Assembly (NCBI GenBank): GCA_002104905.1
Contig: MCFE01000043.1
Span: forward strand, 124,001 to 188,000
DNA: 64,000 nt
Direction of reading: 5' to 3'
DNA from: Basidiobolus meristosporus CBS 931.73
Taxonomy: Eukaryota > Fungi > Basidiobolomycota
Position 1 is the first letter of the stretch. Every line of letters starts with the position of its first letter. Positions 33,781-57,340 of the stretch are shown here, in pieces. The notes under the pieces were generated by a model. It made no database searches. It was not told the origin of the DNA and worked only from the letters and a program-made list of their open reading frames with translations. The position numbers and the translations under genes were made by a program.

Positions 33781-34737
33781 ACCATCAAAGGAGCATCTGG
33801 CCGGAGTTCACTGCTGTGGCTCACTTGGCCAATCCATACCTACCAGTAAGCGGGGGGAGGGGGGGTTCCACCTAGATCCAAGTGTTGGGGAAGACCAGAT
33901 CACTGTGGTACCCCCTTCCAGTTGGGTTTGGACAGGGAACACGTACCACTAGTCACCATATAGCAGCTTCATGGCAATTGGTGCGTGCTGTGTATTGATG
34001 AGCGAGTGACCAACATGAAAATCTACCATAGGGAGGGAGGAGGGCGACCGGACAAAGCACTGATCGCTCTCATGGGATGGTGTGAGCATCGCCACGGCAT
34101 GGGTACATCCATGTAGATCCAACATTGCCAGCCTCCCCCTAAAACCCGGTGGCTTGGCTCCATGGTAAGATTCAAGTCTCATCAACCATCTTCACGGCCA
34201 GTGGTGGGCCAGGTAGTTTGGATACGGAAGCGGTCATGGCATCTTGGGTCATCCAGGTGAGGGTACACACCGCAAGTACCAAGCTGTGACCACATTCGGT
34301 GGACTCGGTTGGGCGTCAACACAATTGAGGCGACGTGCAGCGTTCCAAACCCAATTTGGATCCCCACCCAACCAGGTAGGAACTTGTCTGGGGGGGTAGA
34401 TTGTAGCCCAGGGGGGGGGAATGATTGGCTGAAGGGGAAAATTCACGAGCCACCAAACCCATCCCGGACAGAGCGGGTAGCGTGCAGTGGTGGCGAACAT
34501 GGGTGAAGGATGAGATGATCCGGTGACGCGATGATGGTGGCATCCTAGAGTAACCACCACGGTGATGGCGAGATTGACCGGGCAAGTGGGGTGATTGGTC
34601 CACCAGCTTCACACTCACCGCACGTTATTTTTACCATCTGTCGGATGGGAGCGACCATCCACTGGCCAGGTTTGACCCTTGGTATGCATACGTAACAATG
34701 GCGAGGGGGAGAGAATGCAGTGGATGGTGGGCCAGAG

Positions 34738-34744
34738 TATAAAA
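34738..34744 (+). promoter_or_regulatory. Putative TATA box of the quinone reductase gene
   Basis: TATAAAA ~90 bp upstream of the ATG at 34828; position only. Confidence 0.45.
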
Positions 34745-34827
34745 TCCCTCCCGACATTCCCGACATGGGACTTCGTATCCAATCCTCGATCCTCGACCCA
34801 CTTCCCTCAATCCCACTTCCCTTCACC

Positions 34828-35439
34828 ATGGTCAAGATCTACATCATCATCCACACCGTTTACCACCACATCTACCAACTCGCCCTTGCCATCAAGGAAG
34901 GCGTCGAGAAGGTTCCCGGCGTGGAGGTCTCCCTCTTCCAGGTCCCCGAAACCCTATCGGAGGAGGTGTTGGCCAAGATGCACGCCCCACCCAAGCCGGA
35001 CATTCCGGTGATCACCCCGGCGCAGTTGGAGGAAGCGGACGGCTTCATCTTCGGCATCCCCACCAGATACGGCACCCAGCCAGGTCAGTGGAGAGCATTC
35101 TGGGACGCGACCGGCTCCCTGTGGGCCCGTGGCGCTTTGGCCAAGAAGTTCGCCACCACCTTCTTCTCCACCGCGTCCCAACACGGCGGACAGGAGACCA
35201 CCGCATTGACCTCGCTGACCACCTTGGCCCATCACGGAATCATCTACGTTCCCCTTGGCTACACCTCGCCCCATCTCACTGACAACAGCGAGGTGCTCGG
35301 GGGCAGCGCGTACGGCGCGGGCACCATCGCCGGTGGAGACGGCTCTCGCAAACCATCCGCCAAGGAGTTGGAGGTGGCCAACCACCAAGGGGAGTACTTT
35401 GCCAAGATTGTCCAGCAGTATGTCCGCGGTGCCCAGTAA
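34828..35439 (+). CDS. Flavodoxin-like NAD(P)H:quinone oxidoreductase, WrbA/Pst2/Ycp4 family (203 aa, intronless)
   Basis: FGIPTRYG, FFSTASQHGGQETT, GGSAYGAG...DGSRKPS..ELEVA..QG; start chosen at ACCATGG. Confidence 0.95.
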   Translation: MVKIYIIIHTVYHHIYQLALAIKEGVEKVPGVEVSLFQVPETLSEEVLAKMHAPPKPDIPVITPAQLEEADGFIFGIPTRYGTQPGQWRAFWDATGSLWARGALAKKFATTFFSTASQHGGQETTALTSLTTLAHHGIIYVPLGYTSPHLTDNSEVLGGSAYGAGTIAGGDGSRKPSAKELEVANHQGEYFAKIVQQYVRGAQ

Positions 35440-35840
35440 TTGCCCCTGGAGCGCGCTATCTGCAACCTTTCCCCCTTCCCGCGGCCCCTCCCCTCCACTC
35501 CAACATCCACACCACCCCTATGTCGCCACCCCCCCCTGGTGCTCACATTCTCCATAATAAACCAACTCAAACCAACAAACCCTGACATCAGTGTTACATA
35601 AGTTGTGTCAGCATGAGACGGACGGGACCTGATGTCGTCATTCGGCTGACGTCACCCAACCATCCCTTCCTACGCGTCCCAGCGGACCAGTGTTTGAGGA
35701 ATATATATTGTGGCCTGGCCATGGGCAGAGCAGAAAACTCCAGTAAACCAACGAAAGCCACGTTGGCTATATACACCCAAACACACCCAACCCACAGCCA
35801 TACCACAGCACCACATCACGTTACATCCCCCCCACCAACC

Positions 35841-36394
35841 ATGACATCCACTAACAAGGTAGGTTCATCGAGCTGCGACGAGAGAGAGGAGAGACTGACC
35901 CCTGGACAGGAAGGACCCTCAGGAAACACGCTCGCCGGTCTGAGAGACACGGTGTCCGGCAAGGCGAAGGTAAGGGTTGGGATTACGGGTGAACGGAAGC
36001 GATGGTAAGGGAACTAACCAAACCTTGGTTGCTTTCCGGTGTTTACCACGACCAGGAAGAGATCGGGGAGCTGACGGGGAACCCGGAGATGGGCGGGGTG
36101 GGGAGCTACGAGAAGCAGCTTGGTCAACAGGAGCTCGCCGCCCCGGACGGCCCGCGACTGAGAAAGGGTCTGGGAACGGGCGGCCCGAACGAATCCGCGG
36201 ACCAGACGAAACGAACGGTCGAGGATGATCAGGAGATCGATGTGGCCAGGGCCTCGGAGTACGCGGAAGGAGCGGGCACGAAGGTGGCGGGAATCATCGA
36301 GTCGGTGGTTGGAAGTATCATCGGGGACGAGTCGCTCAAGGACCAAGGGGAAAGTAAGAAGATCGAAGGGGAACTTCAGATGCGCAACGCCTGA
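35841..36394 (+). CDS. Small CsbD/UPF0337-like (Hmp1-like) protein, 138 aa, 3 exons (35841-35858, 35910-35969, 36056-36394)
   Basis: GT-AG introns with CTGAC/CTAAC branch sites keep the frame; two repeats, DTVSGKAKEEIGELTGN and GTKVAGIIESVVGSIIGDESLKDQGESKKIEG. Confidence 0.75.
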
Positions 36395-36643
36395 CCCCAA
36401 CCCTAACCCAATCTGACCTGATCATCCACCTATCCACTGACCGTTTGTCGCGTACACCCACTCGGGAAGGGAACCTCCGCCAATCATGGCACTTACGAAG
36501 GATCCAGACAACAAACCACCCACCTAATAAACACCCATTCCCAGACCGCAATCTTGATTGGTCCCTCGATCGGTAGTTGTAAATAAACCGTGGATCGAGC
36601 ATTTATTTGCCCATCACATATCGATATCGCCACTTACCGAGTC

Positions 36644-37678
36644 ATGACTCTACATCCACCCATCCCTCCCCCGAAGCCCATTTTCAGGGATTCGTCCGAG
36701 GGGCAGCCCGTCCCTCCGCCCAGACCGACGGCTCCCCCCGCTCCCTTTGACAGGGAAGACACGAACTTACACGAATGCGACCAAGAGGGCGTCGAGGGTA
36801 GTCAAGCCCGCACCTCACTCATCAGCGCGAAACAAGGTTGCCTACCCGTGGTGCCTCTGGAAGGGGGGAGGCGGCCCAACGAGAAGCCCGGATCCAGAAG
36901 AAAGGAGCTGCCCTCCCTGCCTGTGCACGAGAAACACGTCTACCGGGAGTTGGTGAGAGAGGGGCCAGAGAACGGGGCTGGACTGTTGTTGGAGGAAGAG
37001 GGAAGCGGGAGCGGGAACATGGCGAAGGTGGATCATATGAGCTTCGTCCGTGTCCAAACCGCGTCATCCCATCCAAATTCCCATGATACCAGGTCGGATA
37101 CCCATCCCGATACCGAATCCCCTCCTTACGTCAATCCAGCCGTACCCGTCAACTCTAAACCCCACAAATATGGTCAGTTGGTGGGACAAACCAGATCCAC
37201 CAAACCATTGCCGAAGCCTCGTACCACCTCGGGGGCATTGGAGCTGGCCCAAAGCGAGCTCAAGCTAGCCTACTTCCAGGTGAACTCTCTACAGCAGCGG
37301 GTGTCGAGCCAGCAGGAAGAACTGGACCGGCAGCGGGCACGGGAGGAGCAGCACGCGAGGGAGCGCTCCGAGCTGGTCCTGCGCAACCTGGAGATGTCGG
37401 AAACGGAGGCCCGCCTCAGGGCAGAGATATCGGGGATGCGGGAGGCGATGTCTCGGTTGGAAACGGAGAACGCCCGCCTGACCAGGGAGATGGAGAAGCT
37501 CACGGTGGAGAATGAGCGCCGATTGCTGGCGGTCGAGCGACAATCTGCCTACCTCAAGGCGGAGCTGATCAAAAGCGCCACGTTCGCCGACTCGGCGGTT
37601 CAGCAGATCCTGATGGGGGCCACGAACGTGGGCCAGGTGGCTGCCTGCTTGGGCAGCCTAGGTAAGATCGACCCGTAG
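36644..37678 (+). CDS. Hypothetical protein (344 aa): Pro-rich N-terminus, C-terminal coiled coil
   Basis: Long ORF in the GC-rich island; E/R/L-rich heptad-like C-terminal half; family not recognised. Confidence 0.75.
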   Translation: MTLHPPIPPPKPIFRDSSEGQPVPPPRPTAPPAPFDREDTNLHECDQEGVEGSQARTSLISAKQGCLPVVPLEGGRRPNEKPGSRRKELPSLPVHEKHVYRELVREGPENGAGLLLEEEGSGSGNMAKVDHMSFVRVQTASSHPNSHDTRSDTHPDTESPPYVNPAVPVNSKPHKYGQLVGQTRSTKPLPKPRTTSGALELAQSELKLAYFQVNSLQQRVSSQQEELDRQRAREEQHARERSELVLRNLEMSETEARLRAEISGMREAMSRLETENARLTREMEKLTVENERRLLAVERQSAYLKAELIKSATFADSAVQQILMGATNVGQVAACLGSLGKIDP

Positions 37679-38821
37679 GCCGGGGTCGGGAGTGTACAGT
37701 TGAAGGAAGAATACGTCGGGGATGGGATGCACGTATTATTGTGAATAAACAAGTCGGGTTTTATTGATGAATCTCGTTATGTCCATTGATCGGGTTGGTC
37801 CTGCTTAATGATGGACCACAGAAACATCCCGTTGTACCCCAACACCAAGGAGGCAACGCAGCCGAGAGTGATCAGCGGGCTTACGCTGGGCTTCCCCTGG
37901 CCTTGCTCTAGAAATGGAGGTTAGTCCTGGCTCGAACGACATCCCCCGAGAATTCCTTACCAAAACTGCTCTCCAAGCCTAGCGAGCAGCCCACGAGCGC
38001 CAGGACGAAGAGAAGCGCGGGTGTTGGGTGGTTCATGATGGCACGGAAGAGAGCGCGTGTCGGTGCGGCTATATATGGCACCGTCGGATGCAGGAGCGTT
38101 TCGAGGACCACTTGGAACCGCAATCCATGGTAACTTGGAGCGTTGAAACGCAGATGAGACGTACATGTCGCAAGCGGGCCTCACATCATTTCCAATTAGG
38201 AGCCAATCGATATCTGGGATCCATTTGATGGCCATTTGATGGCCATTTGAGGGATTAATTGAGCCAAAAGCTGGTCGAGCTATCTTTCCATAAATGGGCC
38301 ACCAGTTAGACTACATCAACATGGAATAGGAAGGCAGGAAAGGTGGACAGACTCTAGATGCGATCAGTGAATGCGTCATCAATAGGCATCCTCCTCAGCA
38401 CCCGCACCCGCGGTTGAATCTTGAACACCGCCACATTCCGGAATCAACGGCCAGGATCAGAAGCCACCAGGCTACACAGGTATCTGGCTCGTATCGTGTC
38501 GAGGATCAATAAGGATTGATTGAATGGAAATTCGACACCGCTTCTCGCCACGATGGCCATAAACAGCATTCTCGGATACGACCTGATCTACGTATTTTGG
38601 GAATGAGGTTGGGATCATGAACAAGCACTCAGATCTACGCATTTGGGAATGCAGTTGTGATCATGGATGAGCACTTCATTCGCTCACCGGTGATTCAGAT
38701 TCAATTTCAATACCAGGGACTTCGTAATGGGTGACATCAGGCGGTTCTGGCCAATCAGGGCCGCGATCCCGATAGCCACCTTATGGGGAGTCGCTGGTGT
38801 CGATAAAGCATGGCCGAGGAG

Positions 38822-38827
38822 TATAAA
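38822..38827 (+). promoter_or_regulatory. Putative TATA box of PGM
   Basis: TATAAA 58 bp upstream of the ATG at 38880. Confidence 0.5.
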
Positions 38828-38879
38828 TGGGCCGCACCCGCTGAATCATCCCCTCGTAATTCCCATTCGATCCATTGAA

Positions 38880-40559
38880 ATGCCTGGATTCACAGTCAAC
38901 ACTGTCCCCACCACTCCATACGAAGGCCAGAAGCCGGGCACCTCCGGCTTGCGTAAGCGAGTCAAAGTGTTCCAACAAAAGAATTACACCGAGAACTTCA
39001 TCCAGGCCACCTTGGCCGCCATGCCCGCGCCCGGGGCCAAGGGAAGCACCTTGGTGGTAGGTGGTGATGGCAGATACTACTCCAAGGACGCCATCCAGAT
39101 CATCATCCGCCTTGCCGCCGGCAACGGCGTCACCAAGCTCATCATCGGCAGAAACGGCATCCTCTCCACCCCCGCCGCCTCCAACCTCATCCGCAAGCGC
39201 AAGGTCTCCGGAGGCATCCTCCTCACCGCCTCTCACAACCCCGGAGGCCCCGAGAACGACTTCGGCATCAAGTACAACATCAGCAACGGCGGGCCTGCCC
39301 CCGAGGCCGTCACCGACGCCATCTACGAGAAGACCACCCAGATCAAGGAGTACTACGAGAGCAACATCCCCGAGGTTGATCTCAACCAGATCGGGGAGCA
39401 GAGCTTCGACGGATTCTCGGTCGAGATCGTCGACTCGGTCGCCGATTACGTCGAGATGTCCAAGGAGATCTTCGACTTCCCCAAGATCAAGGAGTTCTTC
39501 CAGAAGCGCCCCGAGTTCAAGGTTCTCTTCGACGGCATGCACGGAGTGACCGGCCCCTACGGACAACGGATCTTTGTCGAGGAGCTCGGCCTCCCCGCCA
39601 CCTCGGTCATGAACTGCGTGCCCAAGGAAGACTTCGGCGGTGGCCATCCCGACCCCAACCTCACCTACGCTCACGAGCTCGTCGAGAGAGTCGAGAAGGA
39701 GAACATCCACTTCGGAGCCGCCTCCGACGGTGACGGTGATCGTAACATGATCATCGGCAAGGGATGCTTTGTCACCCCCTCGGACTCTGTGGCCGTCATC
39801 GCCGCCCACGCCGAATCCATCCCCTACTTCAGAAAGAACGGTGTCAAGGGACTTGCCAGAAGCATGCCCACCAGCACCGCACTCGACCGCGTCGCCCAGA
39901 AGAAGGGCTTGGAGTACTTCGAGGTCCCCACCGGATGGAAGTTCTTCGGCAACCTCATGGATGCCGATCGTCTCTCCATCTGCGGTGAGGAATCGTTCGG
40001 AACCGGATCGAACCACATCCGCGAGAAGGACGGCATCTGGGCCATCCTCGCCTGGTTGAACATCTTGGCTGCCGAGAACGACAAGAACGCCCAGGTCGGG
40101 ATCAAGGACATCTTGGCCGAGCACTACCACACCTACGGCCGCAACTTCTTCACTCGCTACGACTACGAGGAGGTGGACTCCGCCGCTGCCGGCAAGATGG
40201 TCGACCACTTGAACGAGTATCTCACCACCAAGAAGGATGAGTTCATCGGCACCAGCTTTGGTGAGTTCAAGGTCGCCGACGCCGACAACTTCTCATACAC
40301 CGACCCCATCGACAACAGCGTTTCCAAGAACCAGGGCATCCGTATCATCTTCAGCGACAGCTCTCGCATCATCTTCCGTCTCAGCGGCACCGGCTCCCAA
40401 GGGGCCACCATCCGCTTGTACATCGAGAAGTACGAGTCCGATCCATCCAAGTACGACTTGGACGCCCAGGTCGCCTTGAAGCCATTGGTTGAACAGGCCC
40501 TCACTCTCTCGCAGCTGACCAAGTTCACTGGCCGTGAAAGACCCACCGTCATCACATAA
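38880..40559 (+). CDS. PGM: Phosphoglucomutase (559 aa, intronless)
   Basis: [11 protein letters not shown], catalytic TASHNPGG, metal-binding DGDGDR, sugar-binding GEESFG, C-terminal PTVIT. Confidence 0.98.
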
Positions 40560-40902
40560 GCGAACTCGTCCACCGACCATCACCTATGTACATACATATT
40601 CCCTTAATTCACCTCTTCCAATATCGTGAATAATAAATCCAATCCATTTTTCCATTCATTGTTGATTCCCCATGCCTCCGTAGTCGATTTGTTTTTCACC
40701 TGTCGACCGGCATCTTGATTGCCAAAAATATTGATGAAAAAATATCCCAGTCCGGAAGCCAATGATCGTTCTGTCGAGACTTCCAACGACAAAAAAATCC
40801 CAATTCCTGATGTGCGAGCGTTCGGCAACGAAGAGGGGGGGGGGGGGATCGCTATATCTGGATTGATCCAGGTTCGTTCTTGGAAGTGTCAGTATTTTCG
40901 AC

Positions 40903-43900
40903 ATGGACTACGCAAACGTGCTGAAGGAACTGGAGGAAGCCTGTGCCGACTTTCATGTGAGTTGACCTGTGAGTGTGCGGTCTTCGCTTTCGTTGGTTAA
41001 TGGACTTTGCTTGTTCAGGTGCCCGCCACCAGAGTGGCTGCGGAGCAGACGTTGCTAGCCTTCCAAAAGACCCCCAATGTTCTACCCGTTTGCCAATACA
41101 TTCTCGGTAAGTCCTCCCTTCCCCCTTCCCCCGTCCCCTCGGCCTCCGCCTCCCCCTTCAAGCCGAGCAAACCCCCTATCCCACCCTTCGTCGCGCCTTT
41201 GCTCACAGGTTTCTTCATTCCACTCCACCAAGAACACGCCACCAACTCCATGTTGCTCTTCCACGCGGTCACCGCGATGAAGGAGTGCTTCGCTCGGGAA
41301 TACGCCGACCTGGACAAACCGAAGGTCACCGAGTTGAAGAATTATCTTCTCAACTACGTTTTCCAGAAACCAACGTGAGTCACCCTCCCCCTCCTCATTG
41401 CATCTGCTCTCCGTACCCTCGACGGAGCCTACCACCCCGACCCTACCAACCTCGCTGACCCGCTTCAACCACCAATCTAGCCTGGAAAGATATGTTTGTG
41501 AGCAGGTTCTTCAGGTGATATCTCTTTCCAAGCCTTAGCCACCCCGTTACCTCGACTCAACACCCTTTCTCAGGTAGTTGCGGTTATCATGAAGAGAAGC
41601 TGGCAGGATCTCTCGGACGAAGAGAAGGAGTCGGCCTTCCAAGGGATCCTTGGGCTTATCCAAGCCAATGCTCACGGGGTAACTGCAACCATGCTCTTGA
41701 CTCCGCAAAACCAGCCATTCACCCAATCCACCTTCCACAGCAAACCCTCGGGATCCGATTGTTCAGTGCGCTGACCGACGAGTTCTCCAGCACGAAGGCC
41801 AGCAGCATCGGACTATCCTGGGATTTCCATTTTGCCTGCAAACAATCCTTCGAGGTAGGCCATCATTCCCTTCCCCTTCCCCTTCCCCTTCCTCCGCAAC
41901 CATTAACTGACCAACTCACTTCCCTCGATCTAGCGCGTTTATCTTCGAAAAATCCTGGAGCAGGACTTGAAGATCCTGCACGAGCAGCTCAGCCGTGGAG
42001 ACGCTCTTCACGGGGCCAAATGCTCCGAGGGGCTGAAGGCAACGGTCTCGCTGGCGGAGCGGATCCTGACTTGGGAGTTTAGTGAGCAATGTCGGTTCAG
42101 CGACCGCCACGCCGTTCATCTAGTTCGACCTTACTAACCCATCTGAACTCTACAGGCGGTCAGCTCATGGTCGGCTCCTTCGGGGACGCCAGCGACGAGT
42201 TGGTGAAGAAGTTGGTCCTTCCGGAAGATTGGACCGAGATCCTGTTGAACCACGATGTGCTGAACCTCTTTTTCCAGGTAGGTCGCTTTCCATCTCTCGT
42301 GACTCACGGTCCGCGGACTGACCTCGGACGTGGCGTAGCTTTATACAGTGGTCCAGAGGGACGAGGGGGCCGCCAATCACTCTAGACAATGCCTGGTTCA
42401 GCTGTCCGGGCTTCGGGGGCCCATGTTCGCGAATGAGGAGGTTCTTTGCTCGTACGCTTCGTGCATGCTGAGAGGGCAGCTGCAGTTGATCACCAGGTAA
42501 GCATGTGTGGCTTATTTCGCCAGCCCACCCTCCGCTTACACCCATTCCCTCAGCCTTTCGGGCATGATCCACCAAGAGAACTTCGAGTTCGGGCCAGCAG
42601 TGTTGGGCGTGTGCGAGATGATCAATCGCTTGGTCGATACCGTCAAGCTGGCCGTGCTCTGTCAGATGTCGGAGTTCTTCCAGTACATGACGGAGATCGG
42701 CAAGCTCACCTCCACCTGCCTCCAGCACGCGGCAACCGAGGTTGATGATACCTGGAATATGGAGGCGTTCGATCAGCTGCTCGAGATGTGGGTCACTCTA
42801 GGTAAGTGCCTAAACCGTATGCGTGCCGCTGCTCGGGCTAATCCCGGCTAGTTTCCAAGGCCACCGACCCTTACCAGTCGGACGCCGAGCCTCTGAAGTC
42901 GTCCGGATTCATCCCATTCCTCACCAACGCCAGCTCCCACGTGGTTGAAGCCTACGTCCAGGTGCGTCTAGAAATAGCCAAGCAGTTCATCGAGGACTTC
43001 GACGAGGACGACGGGAATTTCAAAGACCAGGTAGGCCGCTTCTCCTCCCGTCTGCTCGTTGCGCCATACGCTGACCCATTCTTCCAGGACATGTACGCCG
43101 ACCAGCTGATCGGCGTTGCCACGCTGGCTCGCATGAATCCCAAGCAGTCGATCGAGGCGCTCGACGGCCTGCTGAGACAGAAGTTCGATCTACTTCGCAG
43201 CCATTACCAGTCCAGCCACGCCCAGTTCGGCGACCAGCATTCGGTGCTGTTTCACGAGCAGATCCACTGGCTCTTGCTGATCGCGGGTCATGTGCTGTGC
43301 GATGGCGGGCAAGGCGAGAAGCCACTCGTCCCTGACTCCCTCATGCGGCTTTCCGTAGCGCAGGACAATTCCGAAAACAACGCGATCGTCTCTCTTTCCT
43401 CCGCAGTGTTCTCGATGCTCGAGTTCCTGTCTCTGGACCCACATGAGCCAATGGTAAGCCGTCCTCAATCCACTTTCCATCGCTGCTCCTGACCGGCCCC
43501 TCCAGGCCACCTTCTGCAGCCCTCTAGTCGCCGAAACCCTCTTCTGGTTCATCGAGCGGTGGTCGCGCACCTATCTTCTCATCGAGCCGCAAGAATACAG
43601 CCATATCAGGTAGCGCAGCGTGCAGACCCTTGATCCCTGCAACCTACTCATTCTCCTCCTCCACCACCCCAGCGCCAGTCTAGCACAGGCGTTCGGAAAC
43701 GGCGTCGGCGGCCAGGCTATTCTGGTCGCGCTCGTTGACAAGCTGCAGAGCAACTTCTACCAATGGAACGCCGAGGAAGAGGTGTTGATCCAGGTAGATT
43801 GGCCATTCAGAACCTCCTCATACACAGCAACTAACCATGACAACCCAGCTGATCAAAATCATCAACACGTTCGCCAAGACCGCCAACATCAGAAACGCCC

Positions 43901-45723
43901 TCCTTGCGTGTGGTAAGTTCTTTGCCCGGGCCTCTCCAGCAGTTCGATCGCTCACTCGACGTAGAAAAATTCCCGGTTCTTATCCAGTTCTTCACTCAAC
44001 ACCTCGGAAACTTCCCGGAGATCGTTCACAGGTAGCTGGTCGGACAACGGCTCGATTCCACCGCAACTCCTAACCCATCCCAAGTGCTTTGATTCAAGCC
44101 ATCACTCTAGTCATCTCGGGTGCTTCGTCGGAGGTGCAACGCCAGCAATACTTTGGCCTTGTGACTGGCGCCGTGGAGGTAAGTCCCGCCATCCTGCCCA
44201 TGGATTGTTCAGCCCCATTCACCTCGGCCGAGTAGAAGCAATTCGTCGCCGTGCTCCAGCGCCCTGATTTCAATCAAGTCTACCAGAACTCCGATGTCAT
44301 TTCCCAAGTGCTGAACTCGCTTGATGTACGTATTCTTGTTCCCTGCCGCCCGGCCGTTGCTAACACCCCTGCCCCAGATGCTCGATGGACTGGCCTTGGC
44401 TGCCGACCCCTTCAACACCAAGTATATCCACGCGTTTGCTTCCCGATTCTTCGAAAGCCTTGCCCAGCTTCTCAATATTTATCAACGCCACCCTGAAGTG
44501 GAGATCCAGATCATCCAGCTGCTTTCGTCCTTGTGCAAATATCTGGTGAGTGCCGCGGAGTCTGTATCGTTCTGCTGCGTCTAACCCCCCTCGGAACTCA
44601 GGACTTTAGTGAGCTCGAGGCGCACCAGGTCAGAGACTTCTATCTGGTCATCGGAAACGCCATCAAGGTCTATTCTACCCAGAGCCTTAGTAAGCGTCTA
44701 TTCAACCTCAACCTCAGCCTCAACCCTCACCACGCATCTGCCCTAACCCCTCCCAAGACAAGGCCAGGGATCGCAATTACGACAAGCAGCAGGAGAACCC
44801 TTACCAAGACATCGTTGCCTTCACCAAGCTGTTGTTGGCTCTGATCGTCTCTGAGCCCTCGGCCGCCGACGTCGCCGAAATCCTCTTCTTCGGAACAAAC
44901 CAACTGATTCCCCTGATGACCTTGGAGATGCTCGAGGTTGGTGCCTCGATGTAATGTGGGTGGGTCCCCGTCGCGCTAACCTCGTCTTTGCTTAGATCCC
45001 CAAGATCTGCGGCGATTATGTGGAGCTTATTGCCCAGTTGATTGACCGTTACCACGACAGACTGGTCAACCTTCCATCCGACCTATTCGTAAGCCTGATG
45101 CAGTCCCTGGAGTACGCGCTCAGACAATATCCTTTCTATGCCAGACACCACTGCTAGCTTCGTGGCCCCTAGGCTCCTTGACTCGTGTCCCCACCCCTAT
45201 CTATGACATCTCTAGGTTAGCCTTCCAGTCCATAGCCTCCCTGGCCCTATTCTTCGCCAACAACCCCTCTGCCAAAGGTACGCCCACTGTCCAGCTTCCC
45301 ATTCGTCGCTCTGACTAACTTCCCTGCAGAGTTCCTCCTTCCGACCATGCGGAAGTTCCTGGACCAGATCATGAACATGCTGCTGTACGAGGAATTCGAC
45401 ATGGACTTGCTCGAACCGGCTAGCGAAGCCTTGTACTTGCTAATCGCTTCCCAACAGGTAGCCACCCCTTCACATGACCTGCCCTCGCACCCCGTATTGA
45501 ACTCCCTTCCACTTAGGAGCAATTGAGCGTCATCGCCCACACCGTCATTCAGCAACAAGTCAACCCGCAAGTCCAGGTGAGATTGTCCGGCTACTTCACC
45601 CACCTCCAGCAATCCATACCCGCGGTGCAAACGTATCCGCTGATGGCGAATTGCTCCGCCGGCTTCCGAGACACCCTCACGAAATTCTTGATGGACATTC
45701 GAGGTGTCTTGCGAGTCAAATAA
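40903..45723 (+). CDS. XPO4: Exportin-4 (importin-beta family), about 25 exons
   Basis: Manual splicing through ~24 short introns gives a continuous frame: LERYVCEQVLQVVAVIMKR, EFSSTKASSIGLSWDFHFACKQSFE, LPSDLFVSLMQSLE, ...FLMDIRGVLRVK*, resembling animal XPO4 as I recall it. Confidence 0.9.
45127..45194 (+). other. U12-type (minor spliceosome) AT-AC intron in XPO4
   Basis: 5' site ATATCCTTT, branch site TCCTTGAC (45175-45182), 3' AC 13 nt after the branch A; removal restores LEYALRHPIYDISRLAFQ, retention hits TAG. Confidence 0.92.
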
Positions 45724-47534
45724 TTCCAATCCTCTATAATAAACCTTTTGTTTTCTTCCCATGGATGTATCTGCCGGTACTCTCGCAGCTGTCCTGTGCT
45801 TAGGGGTCTGCTAACCTGTGAATTCATTTAGATACATTGGCTTTTTAGCATAGGGTGGTTGGTTCATACTCTTTCTTGAATTCCTTGAAATTCCCAATCA
45901 TGCCAGTTTTCCATAATACTACAGTTCAAACAAGAAGGATATCATTGTCTTGTATATATATATCATCAAAGTTGGTGAGTTCCACTCCTGATTCACTCCC
46001 CAGTTGTGAAGTTCCATCTGGTAAACCACTGTATTATAGTTATATAAAGGTAACCCAAATGCCTACATGCTCTATAGACATTTAGTAAACCAGCAGATTT
46101 GTATCATCGCACTTGTTTTCCAGGCCACTGCTAATACTCCTAATATCCTGCAATCAAGGCATCATGTACACTCTCTGGGATGTGTCTTATGATCCATCAG
46201 GATACATGACCTGAACTTCTTTACAGAAAGATCAAATACAACACAATTCCTGGAAACACACATCTCCAGAATCATTTTAAAATTTGATACTTTGATGTTG
46301 TTAGTACTTACAAAACATAGTCACATAATGGTTTGGCAAAGAAACCTTATAGAATGAGTCAAAGAAGGTCTCTTAAGTGTAGATGTAGAATTCAGAGTCA
46401 CAAGCAGATCTTTAAGAAATATTTCAAACAGGATACATGACATTTTGGCAGTAAAGGTTTCAAGTCTTTGCTTATTGTTGAATCTAGCAATAGCACCACT
46501 CCTCAGCATGGATCAAAGTTGCCAAATAGATGTCCAAACTCAAATATAAAATTACAATAATAAGATAAACTCAGTAAGCCTTACAATGACTGCAAAGAGT
46601 TAGCATGAAAACTGAGGCATACATACTAATCTCAGTTTTCTGGCAATTTCATGCTAATTACAACCTTGATTAGCCTCTATCAAATTATGTTACAGATCAG
46701 CACTAACCAATATATTAGGATCAGGAGAAAGTAAGGGAAGTGGACTGAATATTTTGTCTGGTGCAAGCTTCAGCCTAAGTAACTTATCAGCACAATCAAT
46801 ATAGCTTGTTTTTGGAGCTAGCCTAAGTTGCTGCCTTGAAAGTAAAGCTATGTGTCAGTTCAGGTCAATACTCTTGGTGTGTTCTTTTCTATGGGATGTA
46901 CTTGCATAAAGAAGGTTCCTGAATATCCACTGCTTTCTCATGTATGTCTATATTCACTCTATGCACAATGTGCTGAGGGATCTCAGTATACATTATGCTC
47001 TAACTATATCATATTACTAAACTGGCTTATTCAGCTGGGTATACTCTGTCTTAGCTTTCTATATGCTCTAATACATCTCAATCTTGCACAAACCATTATG
47101 TATAGACCCAGTTGTCCATCTATTTCTTCCTCTGCAAAGCTCCAAATTACTTACTAACCAAAATTTTTGCCATATATGCTTCTAGCAATTAGCTCACTAG
47201 ACCATAGAACAATACCCTCTATGTCTGACAGTGCCTAAACCTTACTGCTTGATAGTAGTTAATACAGTAACAGATCCAAAGAAAAAGAAGTTGACTACAG
47301 ACCAGGTAGATACCAGCTTAGTATCCAATGAATATCAATTTGGTCCTGCTGGTGGATTCAATCCAGTTCAACAATCAGGATTCTGCAATAAGGCCATGAC
47401 AGTGCCAGCAGTTTGGAATTCTTGACCCTCTTAACAGTATTATGGTGAGTTTGTCACAATGTTTTGCTCTCTTTATTACCAAATAAACTTATAATATTTA
47501 GACAACCTTAAAACAGGGTATTAATGGCATTAGG

Positions 47535-48345
47535 TGCTGCAAAAGTCATGGAGGAATTGGAAGTAACTGGGGGAACAAGTGAATAATGTTGCCTTCACTT
47601 AATGATCCAAGGAATGTAAAAGTGGTATTTATACTTTAAATGCTCTTGGCAACTCAAGCACATAAATATGCTCAGGGAGGTCCCAAGAACCTATGTGCAA
47701 GGTTTTGGGCTGTTTAGACAAGTTTGAGAAATTTCATGTTTTGGATAACTGATGATTTTGTGAGAATATTCAGAGTAAATACCAACAATGAGTTTGGTGA
47801 GGATTCTCTGGGATTTGCAGGTGACAATCTAAGTGACTAAGCTAAGTGAGTATTAGGTGCAATTACACATTTTTACAACACTCCCACTCATCTAAACACT
47901 CATATTAACTAGTTCTTATTGCAATCAAAGATATTCAAGTTTGTCACTAGCAACAGTGTGGTAAATATCTCTGCAATCATTTCATCCTTAGGACCATATG
48001 TTGTGGGAAAACAAGTAGATTATGTGATTTTCACTTAATGATTTATTGTATGTAAAAGTAGTATTTATACTTTTACATGATCTTGGCATAAAAACATGCA
48101 GAATAGGTTTAGGAAGGTCTCAAGAGCATGTGTGCAAGATTTGGGGCAGTTTGGATAACTTTGAGAACTTTCATGTTCTGGGTACCTGATATCTTGGTGA
48201 AAATATTCCAAGTAGTCCCAACATGGAATTTGGTCAGTTATTTTCTAAGATTTGTAGGTAATGATCCAAGTGACTAAGTCAGGTGATTATTCAGGTGGAA
48301 TTACAAATTTGTACAGCACCATAAGCAATGATAACTAAGTTAGTA
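47535..48345 (-). mobile_element. 3' end of a Copia element (RNase H tail, PPT, 3' LTR 47535-47880), interrupted by a solo LTR
   Basis: CTCCCACTCA (reverse PPT) at 47881; reverse complement resembles ~32215-32340. Confidence 0.85.
47999..48318 (-). repeat. Solo Copia LTR with 5-bp TSD CCATA
   Basis: CCATA at 47994-47998 and 48319-48323. Confidence 0.9.
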
Positions 48346-49036
48346 TAATGGTATATGGCTGAATGGATTAGGATTCTTACAATTCAAGGAGCTTGTTTCT
48401 GAGATCTTTTTTCCATTAGCAGGTGGTCCAAAATGGTGGTTAACAGCTCCAATATTTGCATTCTTAGCCTCATTTTGAGCAGCAGCAGATTTGGTAAAAT
48501 CTTCCTCTAGCAATCATTCAATAATGATCTATTTTTTTGCAATTCAAGATAATATTCTATCCAAAAGCTTGTCTAACAGTCAGCTGAGGTCATATGAGTA
48601 CATATAACAATATATTTCATTGTAGATCTGGACCCTCAATTGCTGGAATTACACAATTTTCTTCAGTAGTGGTAGAGCACCAACACATTATATTTCTTGA
48701 CATATTTACATGTCAGCTTGATAGACTCTCCTTCATAACTAGCTTGAGTAGTTACTGAATGAGTCTATTGAAGGCAAGGCATTCTTCTCCACAGCAATAT
48801 CCCCATTAACATAGTCCTTTGAACAGTGGTAGTTGTCTTTAACTTTGGCAGAGCAATAGTGTGGAGGTCTTTCTCCAGACTAGCAGAAAAGGATCCAAGG
48901 CAAAGTAGACACCAAGAGAACAGCAAGCTTGGGGCTCATAACCTGTTGCAATATTCTGAGGAGTATTGGAAGTGATGTGGAGAACTAGAGGATTTACATG
49001 TTATTCACTTGTAGATTTATTGATCAAGATAAATTT

Positions 49037-49314
49037 ATAGTCTACCAGCTGGCAAGTATATGCTATAAGGGCATATGGCCAAATGGATAAGGTGCCTGAC
49101 TATGGATCAGGAGATTCCAGGTTCAATCCCTGGTATGCTTGTTATTTTGCAACCAAGATTTTGTAGTCTACAACTATGAGAAAATGTTACATGCAATGAA
49201 TCAATGAAATACCATTGAAGGAGAGGTCAATTCATCAAGTGTGCCAAGTTCTTAGTCACAAAAGCATAACGTTGGTGAATAAAATATTGGCTTATCTAGC
49301 CAAACATAGAGTGA
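49037..49314 (+). repeat. Fragment of a third copy of the tRNA unit
   Basis: Near-identical to ~56344-56620. Confidence 0.93.
49069..49141 (+). pseudogene. tRNA-Arg(ACG) pseudogene (anticodon now ATG)
   Basis: Copy of 56375-56447 with CpG changes, including B-box GTTCGA>GTTCAA. Confidence 0.88.
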
Positions 49315-49781
49315 TGTTATGTCCTAAAAACGCAGATTGGAGTGATGAACTACTGATTGGTTGATTTGACCAATTTCAGACTGTGAAAATGAACTGTCTT
49401 TATTTAAGGTGAGTGTCACTTTTGATAGTTATTAGCTTGAAGCACTATGTTGCAGTTTGCACAGGATTGTAGCATGATTTCCAATTGCTTGTATCTTGGT
49501 CACTAGTTGAGCTCTGTCTTTGAAACTATATAGCATTAAGGCTTAGTCACTGGGCTATATATAGTGCAAATTTCATGTTACAGGTCTTAGTAATTTTAGA
49601 GTAAATAAAATATTTATCAATAGTTTGATTGTGTCACAAGTAATGACGGTGTGCTTCTGAAACTTGGTACATGTCTTTGGAATTGGTGATGATGCATTGC
49701 TGCCAAGTTTCAGAATTGTACATTCATGGGTTCCTCTTTGCATGGGCTGTTTCTATGGTAGTATATTTTTATTTTGTAACA
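49315..49781 (-). repeat. Gypsy-2 3' LTR (467 bp)
   Basis: TGTTA...TAACA termini; GGTGGAAAAG purine tract adjacent on the minus strand. Confidence 0.85.
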
Positions 49782-50805
49782 TACTTTTCCACCATAATTG
49801 GTTTCTTCTCCTGAAGTAACTTGTTGGCCTTCCTTATTCCACCAGAATTGCTTGTTGCTTTGTTCTTCTGGTGTCATTCTTGCCCTAGTGAGGTAGTTTC
49901 TGTGTACCAAGGTTAGTCTGACTTTGCCTTCCCTATCACACAGCTTAGTATGTGTTAAATGGGCATTTTTGGAGAACTTTGTATGTTCCTTTCCAGTTAG
50001 ACTCAAAATTTTGCTTTGTTTTGTTTTTAATGAGCACATATTCTCCTTCCTAGTAGTTCAGAGTGTTTGCATCTCTTGTCATAGCAGATTTTCAATCTTT
50101 CTGAGGCTCCTTTTGCTCTGGATATGGCTGCTGCTCTATTTTGGCCCAGTTCTTCTTGTTCTCTTGTCTTGTATTCTGCTAGGTCCTCAGGATCCTTATA
50201 TATCCCATAGATCCGGTTTCTGGGTGTCTCCTGGTATGACTGGGTGTCTTCCATACATCATGTAGAATGGGAAGTACCCAGTTGTGGCATGAACTCATAT
50301 TCTGCAAGCAAAAAGTGCCTGATTAATGAACTGGTCACATTTGTGTGTTGCTCCCTTGCAGTATTTGGTTAGCATTCTTCCAAAGAGTTCATTGAATCTT
50401 TCTATGGCTCCATTAGTTCTTGGACAGTAGGCCAAAGTCTAGGAGGTGGTTAATGTTCAGTAACTCCTGGTAGTGTTCCAGGGATTTTGCCATGAAGTTG
50501 GCACCTCTGTCTGTTAGAATTTCAGCTGGGCAACCATAGTTCATTTCTATTTCTTCATATATGAACAAGGCTACTTCTTTGTGGCTTGCTTCTCTGAATG
50601 CTCTTGCTACTGGCCACTTAGTGCAATGGTCTATTCCCACCAGGATCCATTGTTTTACAGAATTTGTTTTAGGTAAAACTCCAATAAAGTCAAGTGCCCA
50701 ATTTGTGGAATGGTTCAACTAGCAGTAGTGGATACATTTGCAAGTTGTTCTGGTGAGCATTTTGGGTGAGTTGGCACTCTGGGCAGGTGCAGACTAGGTG
50801 CTTAA

Positions 50806-51136
50806 TGTTGTAAAATTTGTATTTCCGCCTAAATATTCACCTAACTTGGTCACTTAGATCATCACCTTCAAATCCTAGAGAATACTGACCAAATTCCTTG
50901 TTGGATTTACTTAGAATATTTTCACCAAAATACCAGGTACCCAGAACATGAAAATTCTCAAAGTTGTCCAAACAGCCCCAAACTTTGCACACATGTTCTT
51001 GGGACCTTCCTTAACCTATACTACGTGTTTGTAATGCCAAGACCAGGTAAAAGTATATACTACATCATAATCATAAGTGAAACACATAATCTACTTGTTC
51101 TCCAATCACTTCCAATATCTCCAAGACTCTTACACA
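50806..51136 (+). repeat. Solo Copia LTR with 5-bp TSD CTTAA inside Gypsy-2 integrase region
   Basis: CTTAA at 50801-50805 and 51137-51141. Confidence 0.92.
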
Positions 51137-54011
51137 CTTAATGTCCTTTGACATTCTTGGCCACCAAGCTTTTCTAGACACTGTTTCTGTGGTCCATTTG
51201 ACTCCCAAGTGTCAAAATCCTTGGTGGTACTTGGCTATTAAGTCTGTTCTCATGGCAAATGGTATACATGGCACATTTCCTGCACTGGTTTTCTTGTAGA
51301 TTACTTCTTGGTGTTGAGTGGAAGTGTCTACTGTTTTCTGTCCACTTTTCTTTGGATTTCTGGTGTGGTCTGAGTTGGAAAAGTTCCTGACTCCCAATGC
51401 ACTAGTAGTAGTTCTGGCCAGTCCTTTTCTTCTTGTAGCATAAGTGTTTTCAATGTGGGGTTTCTGGAGAGGGCATCAGCAACATTGATTCTTCTTGCCA
51501 TTGAGGTAAACAATGTCAAAGTCAAATGTCTGTAGGTATTCTACCCATCTTGCTACTTGTCTGGAGAGCTGTTTCTGTGTCCACAAATGTCTCAGGGAGG
51601 CATGGTCAGTTCTAACAGTTACTTTGGTTCCTTCTAGGTAACATCTCCATGTCTTGAAGCATTTCACAGTGGCAGAGAGTTCCTTTTCAGGTACTGGGTA
51701 GTTCAGTTCTGCTGCTTGTAGTTTCTTTGACTCATAGGCAATGGGGTGTTCTCTATTGATGTCATAGGATAGTACCTCTCCAATTGCAAAATCCAAGGCA
51801 TCTGTTGTAACTGGGAATGGTTGCTCAAAGTCAGGGAAGGCTAGCACTGGGGTGTTGCTCAAGCAGTCCTTTAACTGCTGTCAGGCTGTTTCTTGCCTCT
51901 TGGTCCATAGGTACGGTTCTTTGTTTTGCAGGAGTTGTGTCAGTGGAGCTGCTATTCTTGAGAAGTCTTTGATGAACCTTCTATAGTAACTTGTTAGTCC
52001 CAGGAATGATCTTAGTTCCTTTACTGTTTTAGGGCTGGGCCATGTCTTGATAACTTCTATTTTCTTTGGGTCTGTTCTGAGCCCTTTTGCAGAGAGTATG
52101 TGTCCCAAATATTCCACTTCTTGGATGAAAAATTCATATTTCTTTGGGTTTGCTACAAGCTTGTGTTCTTCTAGGATCCTTAGTACCTGTTTCAAGTCCT
52201 TTGTATGTTGTTCCTCATTCTTACTGTATATCAGGATGTCATCCAGGAAGATGATTACAGATTTGTCCAGGAGATCCTTGAGTATGTTGTTCATAATTGT
52301 CATGAATGTGGCTGGGGCATCAGTGAGACCAAAGCTGAGTACTGTGAACTCATAATGTCCATATCTTGTTCTAAAGGTGGATTTTGAGATGTCTTCTGGC
52401 TTAATTCTGACTTGATAATACCCTGAAGTTAAGTTAATTTTGCTGAATATCTTAGCTCCTTGTAATCTCTCTATTAGCTCTTGCACTTTTGACAGTGCAT
52501 ATCTATTCTTGACTGTTACTGAGTTGAGAGCTTGGTAGTCTACACACATTCTGAGTGAGCCATCTTTCTTTGGTACAAAGAGGATAAGAGATCCCCAAGG
52601 GGAATTGCTTGGCCTAATGAATGCCTGTTGCAGTAGCTTGGTTATTTGATTCTTCAGAGTATCCAGCTCCTTGGGACTTAGGCTGTAAATGGGTCTTACT
52701 ACAGGCTTGGCTGTACTAGTGTTGATTTCATGATCCACTTCTCTAGCTGGAGGAAATTTGGTTAATTTTCCTGGAAGACCCTGGGGAACTTGCTGGCTAG
52801 ATCTTGTAAGATCTTAGGGAAGTTTCTTGGGGTGATTTCCTCACAGCATATGGGATGATGGTCAATGTCTAGCCGGGCTGCCTGGGTCATTTGGGTGGTG
52901 GTCATCAAAAATTTCCAAGTGCTTTTTTTTTTTCACAAGGGCTGTGTATAACCTTCCTTTTATCCTTACTGGTAGATATACTAGCAGAGTGGATTGGCTT
53001 TGTGTTTGTGCTGTCATTGACTTGGCCAAATATAATGTTTCCTTAGCTTGGAAGTGGTCATGGTCATAGCTTCCTAGTGCACCTGGCTGATCCATTAGAT
53101 TTGCTTGGGAGTGCTCTGGTGAGTTCTTACAGGCGGTTCCTGCATGTTTTTCTTTCTGATCACTTTGTCTTTTTCTACAATCTTTGATGAAGTAACCAGA
53201 TTTTCTACAGTAGTAACACCTGTACCATGTTTTTGAGTTACTAGGGTTGTCTGTCTGCTGTATGTGATCTAATTCCATGGGAGTGGGGCCTTTGGGGGTG
53301 TTCTGCAAATGATCTGGCCAGTTGTGCTGATTCTTCTAGGAGGATGTATGGTAGAAGTGTGGTTTGGTTGCCCATATGGAGTCATAGGTGATGGCATAGT
53401 GTATTGCTGCTTCTGTGGTTGTGGGGAACTTGTAGCTTACTTCTGCTTTTGTTCTTCCCTTGAGACCTTTTAAGAAGTAATGTATCCTATCTCCTTCTGC
53501 CATTTCAAAGACTTGTGCAAAGATGTTCTTGAAGTTTTGTACGTACTCCAATACACTATTTTTCTGTATGAGATTTTCTAGCTCAATTCTTAGTGTTCCT
53601 TGAAAGTTTGGGGAAGGAAGAAGCTTATGATTTTGGTATTAAAGGAGTCCCAACTGGGGAAAGCACAAGTGTTGCTTGCATTTGCTTGTAGTAACTTCCC
53701 TTGGTACCATGATTGAGCTGTGCCTTGTAAGTAACTTCCTATGATGGCTATTTTCTTGTTGCCATCCATGACATTCTTTGCTTGGAACACCTGTTCCACT
53801 TGCACAATCCAGGCAGTTATATTCCCTCCAGTTTTATCACTATAACTATTTAGGTGTATAGGGATTCTGGTATCTTGCCTGTTCATTTCGTTCTTCATTT
53901 TAGTACACAGTGTTAGCTGTGCCCAAAGGATACCTTCCAAGGTGTGTTGCCAAGTAGTAGATTCATCTGTGGGCATGTTTTCTTAATGGCTTCTACCAGT
54001 GATAATGTATA

Positions 54012-54021
54012 GCTGCTACCA
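54012..54021 (-). other. Gypsy-2 primer-binding site (tRNA-iMet 3' end)
   Basis: Minus strand TGGTAGCAGC is complementary to GCTGCTA+CCA of the tRNA-iMet at 59093-59164; 2 nt from the LTR. Confidence 0.85.
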
Positions 54022-54023
54022 AA

Positions 54024-54190
54024 TGTTATGTCCTAAAAACGCAGATCGGAGTGATGAACTCTGGTTGTTTAATTCGACCAATTTCGGACTGTGAAAATCG
54101 ACTGTCTTTATTTAAGGTGAATGTTCACTTTTTATAGTTATTAGTTTGAAACACTTTCTTGCGGTTTGCGCGGGATTGTTGCATGATTCC
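54024..54190 (-). repeat. Gypsy-2 5' LTR remnant (167 bp)
   Basis: Aligns with 49315-49480; fused directly to a truncated tRNA-Arg(TCT). Confidence 0.9.
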
Positions 54191-54252
54191 GACTCAAACC
54201 CACAATCCTCAGATTAGAAGTCTGATGCCTTATCCAATTAGGCCACGGGGGC
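54191..54252 (-). pseudogene. tRNA-Arg(TCT), 3'-truncated by the LTR junction
   Basis: Matches 59416-59477 except one C-to-T-type change; acceptor 3' strand and part of the T-stem missing. Confidence 0.9.
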
Positions 54253-54411
54253 ATTTCGTTCTTGTTCCCTTTGTTTTGCGTATAGATGTAAACTAAATGA
54301 AGTACTATCCGGTGATTCCCTTGTGACTCTAGTGACTGTATTCTTATGACCGTCCAAATTTCTGCCAAACCTTAGCCAATTTTAAGTAACATTGGCTAAA
54401 AAAATAAAAAT

Positions 54412-54484
54412 TGCCGTCTCTGCGGATCGAACGCAGGACCTTCAGAACTTCAGTCTGACGCTCTCCCAACTGAGCTAAGACGGC
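54412..54484 (-). tRNA. tRNA-Phe(GAA)
   Basis: Cloverleaf, loop CTGAAGT, GTTCGA T-loop, downstream T-run. Confidence 0.95.
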
Positions 54485-54722
54485 TATACATTTGCTTGAA
54501 TATTGAGTATGAATTAGTTGGCTAATAGTGTAAGATAGTGTCATCACTACCTTGGGCAAGCCCTGTTTGCCTTAGTATCTGCAATACATCCCGTAGTCAT
54601 GGCATACTCTGGATAATAGTTATTTTAATGAATCGCAGTAACCCGTATGGATTTTGTACTACTTAGCCCCTTTGTAACTACTAAGGAGATATATCTGATC
54701 AAGATTTGGTTGCAAGCGTATT

Positions 54723-54796
54723 GCTCTTGTGGCGCAATTGGCTAGCGCGTCTGACTGTTAATCAGGAGGTTGGTGGTTCAAGCCCACCCAGGAGCG
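54723..54796 (+). tRNA. tRNA-Asn(GTT)
   Basis: GCTCTTG/CAGGAGC acceptor; loop CTGTTAA. Confidence 0.95.
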
Positions 54797-55017
54797 ATTA
54801 CCTTTTGCTTGAAGCTTTAGCACTCCCTTTTTTGCCATTCGGCTGGAAACGGGTTAGGAGTCTGGGGTATATTTGTATGTGCCACACACATGTTACTGTC
54901 AACTATCTATTTTAATGAATGTACTTGAATACTGAAGCGAAGAGCTGCACCGCCATTATCCAAGGAGTAAAACTCAAAACTTCTCAGCCAACTAATGTAG
55001 CTGGGACAAAACAAGAC

Positions 55018-55103
55018 TCCGAACACCCGGATTTGAACCAGGGACCTAAAGATTGCTATGGTAACACTACAGTCTTCCGCTCTACCAACTGAGCTATGTT
55101 CGG
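55018..55103 (-). tRNA. tRNA-Tyr(GTA) with 13-nt intron
   Basis: CCGAACA/TGTTCGG acceptor (C1-G72); intron TGTTACCATAGCA after position 37. Confidence 0.95.
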
Positions 55104-55203
55104 GAGTTCACGGGAGTGGGAACCAATATCAATGATAGACTAGATGTTTCAAATAATTGCAGCATTCCCATACATTCCTTTATAACATCTGGAACGTGAA
55201 AAT

Positions 55204-55286
55204 GGAGAGATGGCCGAGTTGGTCTAAGGCGTCACGTTAAGGCCGTGATCTCTTCGGAGGCGTGGGTTCGAATCCCACTCTCTTCA
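55204..55286 (+). tRNA. tRNA-Leu(AAG)
   Basis: Long variable arm; loop TTAAGGC. Confidence 0.93.
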
Positions 55287-55537
55287 TTAGTTTTTGCGCT
55301 CTTCTTTTTCCCGGTATTTCTCTTGACCTTTGGGATGTACACCACCGGTGATCAGGTAGAGCAACAATTTTATGACATGGCCACTTCACTATATGGATAG
55401 CCACTATGATTATGCTCAGTTTAGGCATTGATATGATTGATTTGCCCGCACAGCATTGATGGATATCTTGGCAAATCCCCACGCATACAAAAAAAACCAG
55501 CAGCAGCACCTACATTCAAGTAGAGCCGTTGGCAAAA

Positions 55538-55610
55538 TGCCTTCTGCCGGAATTGAACCAGCGACCTTCTGCTTACTAGGCAGACGCTCTGCCAACTGAG
55601 CCAAGAAGGC
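55538..55610 (-). tRNA. tRNA-Thr(AGT)
   Basis: GCCTTCT/AGAAGGC acceptor; loop CTAGTAA. Confidence 0.95.
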
Positions 55611-56177
55611 AATATGTCTGAGCGCACTAGATGGGCTCTATGAGGAAAATACCTAAGCAAGAGTCTTATTCTATAAAGCTATTTGGGGTGATAAACTGAT
55701 GTAGCACCAGAGCCATGATGTCAGAAGGTAGGGCGGCATGATTGTGCGCAACAACGATAGGTTCGAATTGCAGTTGGACATACCCTACGGAGTGGCTAAC
55801 CAGATGATAAACCGTAAGGCGGTTATGCCAAAAGTTTTGGCAGCCAGCAGTGTTGTTTTGAGGGGCAGTTTAGCCTTGATATTTTGCATTGATTAACTAA
55901 CCCTAATCAAAGGAGGAAACATGCACATTCCTGGAGCTTCGGGTATATGACTCGGCCATCCAAGTCCTTTTTCTGTTTTGTCAGCTTTATGGTGAGTAAG
56001 GTAAGAAGCAACACCTGCGTCCAAGCAGGCACATAACTCCTACTCTTGCCATTCCCAGCAAAACAGCAACGATACAGTAAGCCAGATGCAGCTAGCCAAC
56101 AAAAGAATGAAACGTATTATCTCATACGTCAAAGTATTGCTCAAAGAAAGGAAATCGCAAAGACACCTACAGCAAAA

Positions 56178-56248
56178 TGCATACTCGGGGAATCGAACCC
56201 CGGTCTACCGCGTGGCAGGCGGTAATTATACCACTAAACCAAGTATGC
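56178..56248 (-). tRNA. tRNA-Gly(GCC)
   Basis: GCATACT/AGTATGC acceptor; loop CTGCCAC. Confidence 0.95.
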
Positions 56249-56374
56249 AATTACAATAGGGGGGCGGAAAGGTAGTTCATGATAACATTCAGGGGAAGCA
56301 GTGCGCAACTTTGGATGTCACCACCAAAGGCTAAAGAGATTCATAGTCTACCAGCTGGCAAGTATATGCTATAA

Positions 56375-56447
56375 GGGCGTATGGCCAAATGGATAAGGCG
56401 CCTGACTACGGATCAGGAGATTCCAGGTTCGATCCCTGGTATGCTCG
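56375..56447 (+). tRNA. tRNA-Arg(ACG)
   Basis: Loop CTACGGA; GTTCGA T-loop. Confidence 0.95.
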
Positions 56448-56655
56448 TTATTTTGCAACCAACATTTTGTAGTCTACAACTATGAGAAAATGTTACATGC
56501 AATGAATCAATGAAATACCATTGAAGGAGAGGTCAATTCATCAAGTGTGCCGAGTTCTTAGTCACAAAAGCATAACGTTGGTGAATAAAATATTGGCTTA
56601 TCTAGCCAAACATAGAGTGTACTTAGTCAAGAACGTATTTAAATTCAAAAAGGTT

Positions 56656-56727
56656 TTCCCCATCGGGGAATCGAACCCCGGCCGTCTCGGTGAGAGCGAG
56701 AAATCCTAACCACTGGACCAATGAGGA
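56656..56727 (-). tRNA. tRNA-Glu(CTC)
   Basis: TCCTCAT/ATGGGGA acceptor; loop CTCTCAC. Confidence 0.95.
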
Positions 56728-57021
56728 CTTGTTGATGATACTACTATATGTTTATCTCTTAGTGAACTCGCCATAGTAATAGCACTTACCTAGGCTTAGT
56801 GCAAACCGATTGCTACATTGTGAATCTGGGCGTGTGCCTCCCAGTTGGAATCTTGCATTTTAGACCATCAATTCTATATCAAAACAGTAAGATACTCCGG
56901 AAGCAACGCAACTTAAGAGTGTATGTATTCGCATACCTCGCATACCAAGGGTTAAGAAGTGTGTAAAGTAGATGCCCTTTGCACATTACTAAATAAGCAA
57001 ATATTTGTATGTTATCGAACA

Positions 57022-57095
57022 GCTCGCATAGCTCAGTTGGTTAGAGCGTGGTGCTAATAACGCCAAGGTCGCAGGTTCGACCCCTGCTGTGAGCA
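57022..57095 (+). tRNA. tRNA-Ile(AAT)
   Basis: Loop CTAATAA; T-run terminator downstream. Confidence 0.95.
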
Positions 57096-57268
57096 AATTT
57101 CCTTTTTCGTTTTTTCCTTGCTAACTCATTTCCCTCAAGTTATCGTCGAAATAGATACATACACAAGTGTACTTTCACAAAGTTGTTGTTTAGTGGCTTT
57201 GTTATATTGTATGCTGATAAACACTTGGTAGAAATATACAGTTTATTCTTTATTTTATCGTAACTAAT

Positions 57269-57340
57269 TCTCAGATAGTATAGTGGTAAGTATCCCCGCC
57301 TGTCACGCGGGAGACCCGGGTTCAATTCCCGGTCTGAGAG
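57269..57340 (+). tRNA. tRNA-Asp(GTC)
   Basis: TCTCAGA/TCTGAGA acceptor; loop CTGTCAC; TTTTT terminator. Confidence 0.95.

Follow-up and report, generated by a model that had tools for sequence, protein, structure and literature searches.

A very probable U12-type AT-AC intron in the exportin-4 gene of Basidiobolus meristosporus, supported by motif, reading frame, homology and cross-phylum conservation

The exportin-4 (XPO4) gene of the fungus Basidiobolus meristosporus CBS 931.73 very probably contains a genuine U12-dependent AT-AC intron, its intron 22, which would be removed in vivo by the minor spliceosome. The presence of such an intron in a fungal XPO4 gene is supported by its sequence motifs, by the reading frame, by protein homology and by conservation across phyla. 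The call is decided by two observations: the intron sits at the frame change between two exons that are both homologous to XPO4, and it is conserved in Ambispora gerdemannii.

Exportin-4 is a RanGTP-dependent transport receptor. In the minor spliceosome, U11 and U12 act together in recognising both the donor and the branch site, and U6atac displaces U11. The gene described here lies in a stretch of 64,000 nucleotides (the window) from contig MCFE01000043.1. Its features are collected in Table 1.

Table 1. Features of XPO4 intron 22, the adjoining exons and competing junctions, with positions counted from the first letter of the window.
Feature	Position	Strand	Basis
Exportin-4 (XPO4) gene, 25 exons and 24 introns, 1093 aa (hand-built model)	40903..45723	+	open frame, public gene with identical ends, profile tiling
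Exon 22, 43 whole codons and the first 2 nt of the split His codon	44996..45126	+	mouse Xpo4 match, profile
Intron 22, candidate U12-type AT-AC, phase 2, 68 nt	45127..45194	+	motif, frame, homology
U12 5' splice site ATATCCTTT	45127..45135	+	8/8 to RTATCCTT
U12 branch site TCCTTGAC, predicted branch A 45181	45175..45182	+	motif match
AC 3' splice site, without polypyrimidine tract	45193..45194	+	zero-gap continuity, His at profile state 1001
Exon 23	45195..45277	+	profile states 1002 onward
TAG in the exon-22 frame on intron retention	45155..45157	+	frame reading
Rival in-frame GT-AG pair, 56 nt, +4 aa; GTAAGC donor in exon 22, CAG in the intron	45089..45144	+	homology-disfavoured
Alternative in-frame AG, -7 aa	45214..45215	+	exon 23 drops from 10.0 to 2.3 bits

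Splice Signals of Intron 22

A sequence-only reading of this DNA had assigned a U12 donor, a U12 branch site, a spacing of 13 nt and AC ends to the intron, and all of these coordinates proved exact. The upstream exon terminates in CTCAGACA at 45126, and the downstream exon opens with CCCTATC. The predicted branch A lies 13 nt ahead of the final intron base. U12-type AT-AC introns are recognised by an RTATCCTT donor, a TCCTTRAC element some 10-20 nt ahead of the 3' end and an AC acceptor, and intron 22 has all three.

When the introns of the gene are scored against the U12 consensus, intron 22 combines its full donor match with 8 of 9 positions at the branch site and is unique among the 24 XPO4 introns. 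The remaining 23 reach a maximum of 5/8 at the donor and 7/9 at the branch site. A donor of the form RTATC[CT]T has a single occurrence on the sense strand of the surrounding gene island (34000-45800), and this is the donor of intron 22.

The composite of donor, branch site and A[CG] acceptor is found in 20 of 3000 Markov samples of the length of the gene (0.7%). Of 300 samples of the length of the window, 27 (9%) contain it one or more times, and the window itself holds a second match at 16597, in AT-rich DNA. Because the composite arises by chance and has this second match, the motif alone is suggestive but not decisive.

The remaining matches to RTATCCTTT within the window lie on its minus strand, in AT-rich DNA with LTR retrotransposons. 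The RNA of intron 22 folds no better than its shuffles (z 0.10).

Gene Model and Exon Homology

It had been claimed that removal of the 68 nt restores the frame and an XPO4-like sequence. Removal produces a stop-free model of 1093 aa, and the profile matches of the two flanking exons adjoin with zero gap. This hand-built model has one AT-AC intron and 23 GT-AG introns, exactly the number that had been given as approximate, with zero internal stops and a median intron length of 59 nt. The public annotation of the same interval carries Pfam PF28490 (XPO4) and has a product of 1096 aa.

Homology searches were run exon by exon, and exons were joined solely for the reading of stops, of length and of the Ambispora junction. 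The profile was obtained by a protein search with the 43 aa of exon 22, which led to a full-length XPO4 from Endogone and then to 30 orthologs. Of the five matches in that search, one (P0123) proved to be a repeat protein rather than XPO4 and was excluded. Pfam on single exons did not find XPO4; neither did a search of PDB sequences with exons 23 and 24, nor a word search across 42842-43489, a stretch free of stops.

Scored alone, exon 22 occupies states 958-1000 of the XPO4 ortholog profile with 44.7 bits, and it matches residues 936-975 of mouse Xpo4 (5DLQ_B) with an E-value of 1.8e-4. Exon 23 begins at state 1002, with 10.0 bits and an E-value of 1.9e-4 against the local profile. The two exons, scored separately, abut without a gap, and both assign the split codon to state 1001. 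This codon, CA in exon 22 and C in exon 23, encodes His; of the 30 orthologs with a residue at this state, 24 likewise have His.

Across the whole gene, the exons follow one another in sequence along profile states 2-1143, exon 4 being weakly placed. Of the 23 major introns, 21 have a position that also occurs in one or more of four fungal orthologs, which argues that the gene model is sound and that an old intron layout has been kept.

Tandem NAGNAG acceptors are present at introns 17 (44233-44238) and 24 (45514-45519), and homology favours the first AG at both.

Conservation in Ambispora and Other Orthologs

Comparison of the intron position with other fungi, as the sequence-only reading had proposed, identified an orthologous AT-AC intron in the XPO4 gene of Ambispora gerdemannii (Glomeromycota, CAJVPL010000023.1). 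It is 74 nt long (positions 5439-5512 of the retrieved locus, L005) and interrupts the same codon in phase 2. Its donor 9-mer, ATATCCTTT, is identical to that of Basidiobolus, and it ends in CAC; its interior has diverged. The branch site is ACCTTAAC, with the A 11 nt before the end of the intron.

No intron was found at this site in seven other ortholog loci, namely those of Endogone, Entomortierella, a Mortierella-like Logan contig, Umbelopsis, Phycomyces nitens, Dimargaris and the alga Trebouxia. Motifs of the form RTATCCT in the XPO4 genes of Endogone, Umbelopsis and Phycomyces fall inside exons or inside introns of the GT-AG type and were discounted. The sole match of a metagenome scan (L012) is a GC-rich, prokaryote-like gene without an XPO4 match and was attributed to chance. 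The XPO4 gene of Dimargaris verticillata (L010) has one annotated intron against 24 in Basidiobolus, a near-total loss within Zoopagomycota.

A second genomic copy of the gene in B. meristosporus (MCFE01001146.1, L002) contains an identical intron at 14601-14668, in exons that are 99.8% identical, and is not independent. The Basidiobolus ranarum contig stops long before the site of intron 22. The cross-species conservation consists of one independent ortholog, that of Ambispora.

Intron 22 is probably old. Basidiobolus would have received it from an ancestor that it shared with Glomeromycota, and the remaining sampled lineages would have lost it. Inheritance followed by loss is the simplest reading since minor introns are rarely gained and commonly lost (PMC10639083), and it draws on a single independent pair, Basidiobolus and Ambispora.

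Alternative Junctions and Readings

Every canonical alternative to the AT-AC junction loses homology when it is scored against the profile. The best of them is the GT-AG pair 45089-45144. This pair could serve as a bypass whenever minor splicing is slow, and the intron would then switch, in a regulated way, between intact exportin-4 and a variant whose helix is damaged. Ambispora likewise has an in-frame GT-AG alternative that spans its intron (L005 5424-5509), at differing positions. Such a switch is unlikely.

It is highly improbable that the same pair is the real intron, an ordinary one removed by the major spliceosome, and that the AT-AC signals are coincidental. The pair does combine a strong donor and a CAG acceptor with a typical length, keeps the frame free of stops and, with a shift of one residue at a tandem acceptor elsewhere, accounts for the public length. 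However, its use removes the conserved segment SLMQSLEY, across which mouse Xpo4 aligns, and lowers the score of exon 22 by 15.8 bits, from 44.7 to 28.9. In exchange it adds 17 residues derived from the intron, of which 15 are unaligned. The pair also lacks a CTRAC branch site, and it cannot account for the recurrence of the same U12 signals, at the orthologous codon, in Ambispora.

The U12 donor might instead be joined to an acceptor farther downstream, either the AG at 45214-45215, giving an AT-AG intron, or the AT at 45199-45200, or both might be used. These acceptors are both in frame, and minor introns of the AT-AG and AT-AT types exist (PMC1557818). Such a junction is very unlikely all the same: Ambispora retains CAC at the orthologous acceptor, and the downstream AG deletes seven conserved residues, with the fall in the exon 23 score listed in Table 1. 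The AG at 45215 lies at a distance of 34 nt from the branch A, whereas a U12 branch site and its acceptor are usually closely spaced.

Finally, there is hardly any chance that the AT-AC intron is removed by the major spliceosome or that the gene is a decaying, frameshifted pseudogene, for although U2-type AT-AC introns exist (PMC1557818) and the putative, divergent U4atac of B. meristosporus is a low-confidence call (PMC11347168), the donor is not of the U2-like form RTRAGT, matching GTRAGT at 2 of 6 positions against 8 of 8 for the U12 consensus, and XPO4 is open throughout, with both genomic copies intact and annotated as full-length.

Public Gene Models

Mis-modelling of this exon by standard gene predictors had also been predicted. 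For the Ambispora ortholog it can be shown directly. There the AT-AC intron is unannotated in the public model, and the public protein is spliced at the GT-AG pair 5424-5509 of L005; the alignment has a gap exactly there, with 4 residues lost. The length of the public Basidiobolus product, 3 aa more than that of the hand-built model in both genomic copies, fits the prediction but does not prove it.

A gain of 4 aa through the GT-AG pair 45089-45144, combined with a loss of one codon through a tandem-acceptor shift (at 44238 or at 45519), gives exactly 1096 aa. Homology favours the hand-built acceptors over both of these alternatives. The pair is probably the source of the extra length in the public model, its junction being deduced from that length. 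Since further combinations of junctions likewise yield 3 additional residues, mis-annotation of the public Basidiobolus model is probable rather than certain, and the model may use a junction other than 45126/45195.

Proposed Splicing Mechanism

In the proposed mechanism, a U11/U12 di-snRNP would pair with ATATCCTTT at the donor and with TCCTTGAC at the branch site, leaving A45181 bulged. U4atac/U6atac.U5 would then join, and U6atac would replace U11. Attack of A45181 on the donor, with AC serving as the acceptor, would allow exons 22 and 23 to be ligated at 45126/45195. The product would be full-length exportin-4, with the His codon rebuilt and a C-terminal helical repeat left unbroken. If the RNA were left unspliced, translation would be expected to stop at 45155, and about 140 C-terminal residues would be lost. 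A regulatory role for intron 22 is not indicated, and Larue and Roy report that minor splicing in Rhizophagus is not linked to proliferation.

The Minor Spliceosome in Basidiobolus

That the organism has a minor spliceosome, as was supposed from the sequence, is right and was already published (PMC10639083, PMC11347168). B. meristosporus has in fact been described as the fungus richest in minor introns, with a count of 249 (PMC10639083) or 237 (PMC11347168). High-confidence U11, U12 and U6atac genes are reported from several mucoromycote and zoopagomycote fungi (PMC11347168). Neither the 64-kb window nor the retrieved loci contain genes for U11, U12, U4atac or U6atac.

Published surveys of minor introns classify annotated introns, so intron 22 may be absent from them. 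Should the public model follow the GT-AG pair, the intron would be missing from the published sets.

Genomic Surroundings

XPO4 is part of a GC-rich gene island at about 34-46 kb of the window, amid AT-rich DNA with LTR retrotransposons. Between 34828 and 45723 the island contains a flavodoxin-like FMN reductase gene, a CsbD-like gene, an unknown ORF with coiled-coil-like sequence, a small ORF, a phosphoglucomutase gene and XPO4. The phosphoglucomutase gene (38880-40559) is intronless, adjoins XPO4 and shows 100% identity to a protein of B. meristosporus CBS 931.73. The contig encoding that protein, MCFE01000043.1 of GCA_002104905.1, matches positions 28880-50559 of the window without a difference. 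The island is present twice in B. meristosporus, with about 99% identity (L002), and is syntenic in B. ranarum (L003).

The AT-rich DNA at 1-33000 and 46000-54000 carries pol ORFs of LTR retrotransposons, Gypsy-like at 854-3565 and 51881-52738 and Copia-like at 26248-29656. A dense array of 25 tRNA genes predicted by ARAGORN (26 Rfam hits) occupies both strands at 49069-61902. Within it, the series Phe-Asn-Tyr-Leu-Thr at 54412-55611 is found again, in the same order, some 5.2 kb further on.

Significance

The analysis corrects C-terminal XPO4 gene models, certainly in Ambispora and probably in Basidiobolus. It also provides a datum for the loss of minor introns in fungi, namely one minor intron that is common to Zoopagomycota and Glomeromycota and absent at seven other ortholog loci. 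The known distribution of the minor spliceosome is unchanged by intron 22.

Counts that are based on annotation can miss AT-AC introns. If such introns hide behind false GT-AG models, the published minor-intron counts for early-diverging fungi would be underestimates.

Comparison with Known Minor Introns

Intron 22 resembles U12-type AT-AC introns in its RTATCCTT donor, in the TCCTTRAC element near its 3' end, in its AC acceptor and in the lack of a pyrimidine tract. It is also like them in having a non-zero phase and in being the single minor intron of an old, intron-rich gene. No essential difference from the class is seen; the branch site TCCTTGAC has G at the purine position, which is within the consensus. 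At 68 nt the intron is short, as are the major introns of XPO4. The published set of minor introns from B. meristosporus is identical to intron 22 in species and in intron class.

The XPO4 gene of mammals is itself a minor-intron gene (PMC12956336), with a minor intron that is AT-AG in human and GT-AG in mouse (PMC1557818, Table 3). Its likeness to the Basidiobolus gene consists in a U12-type intron within the same gene family, whereas the terminal dinucleotides reported for mammals differ from the AT-AC of intron 22.
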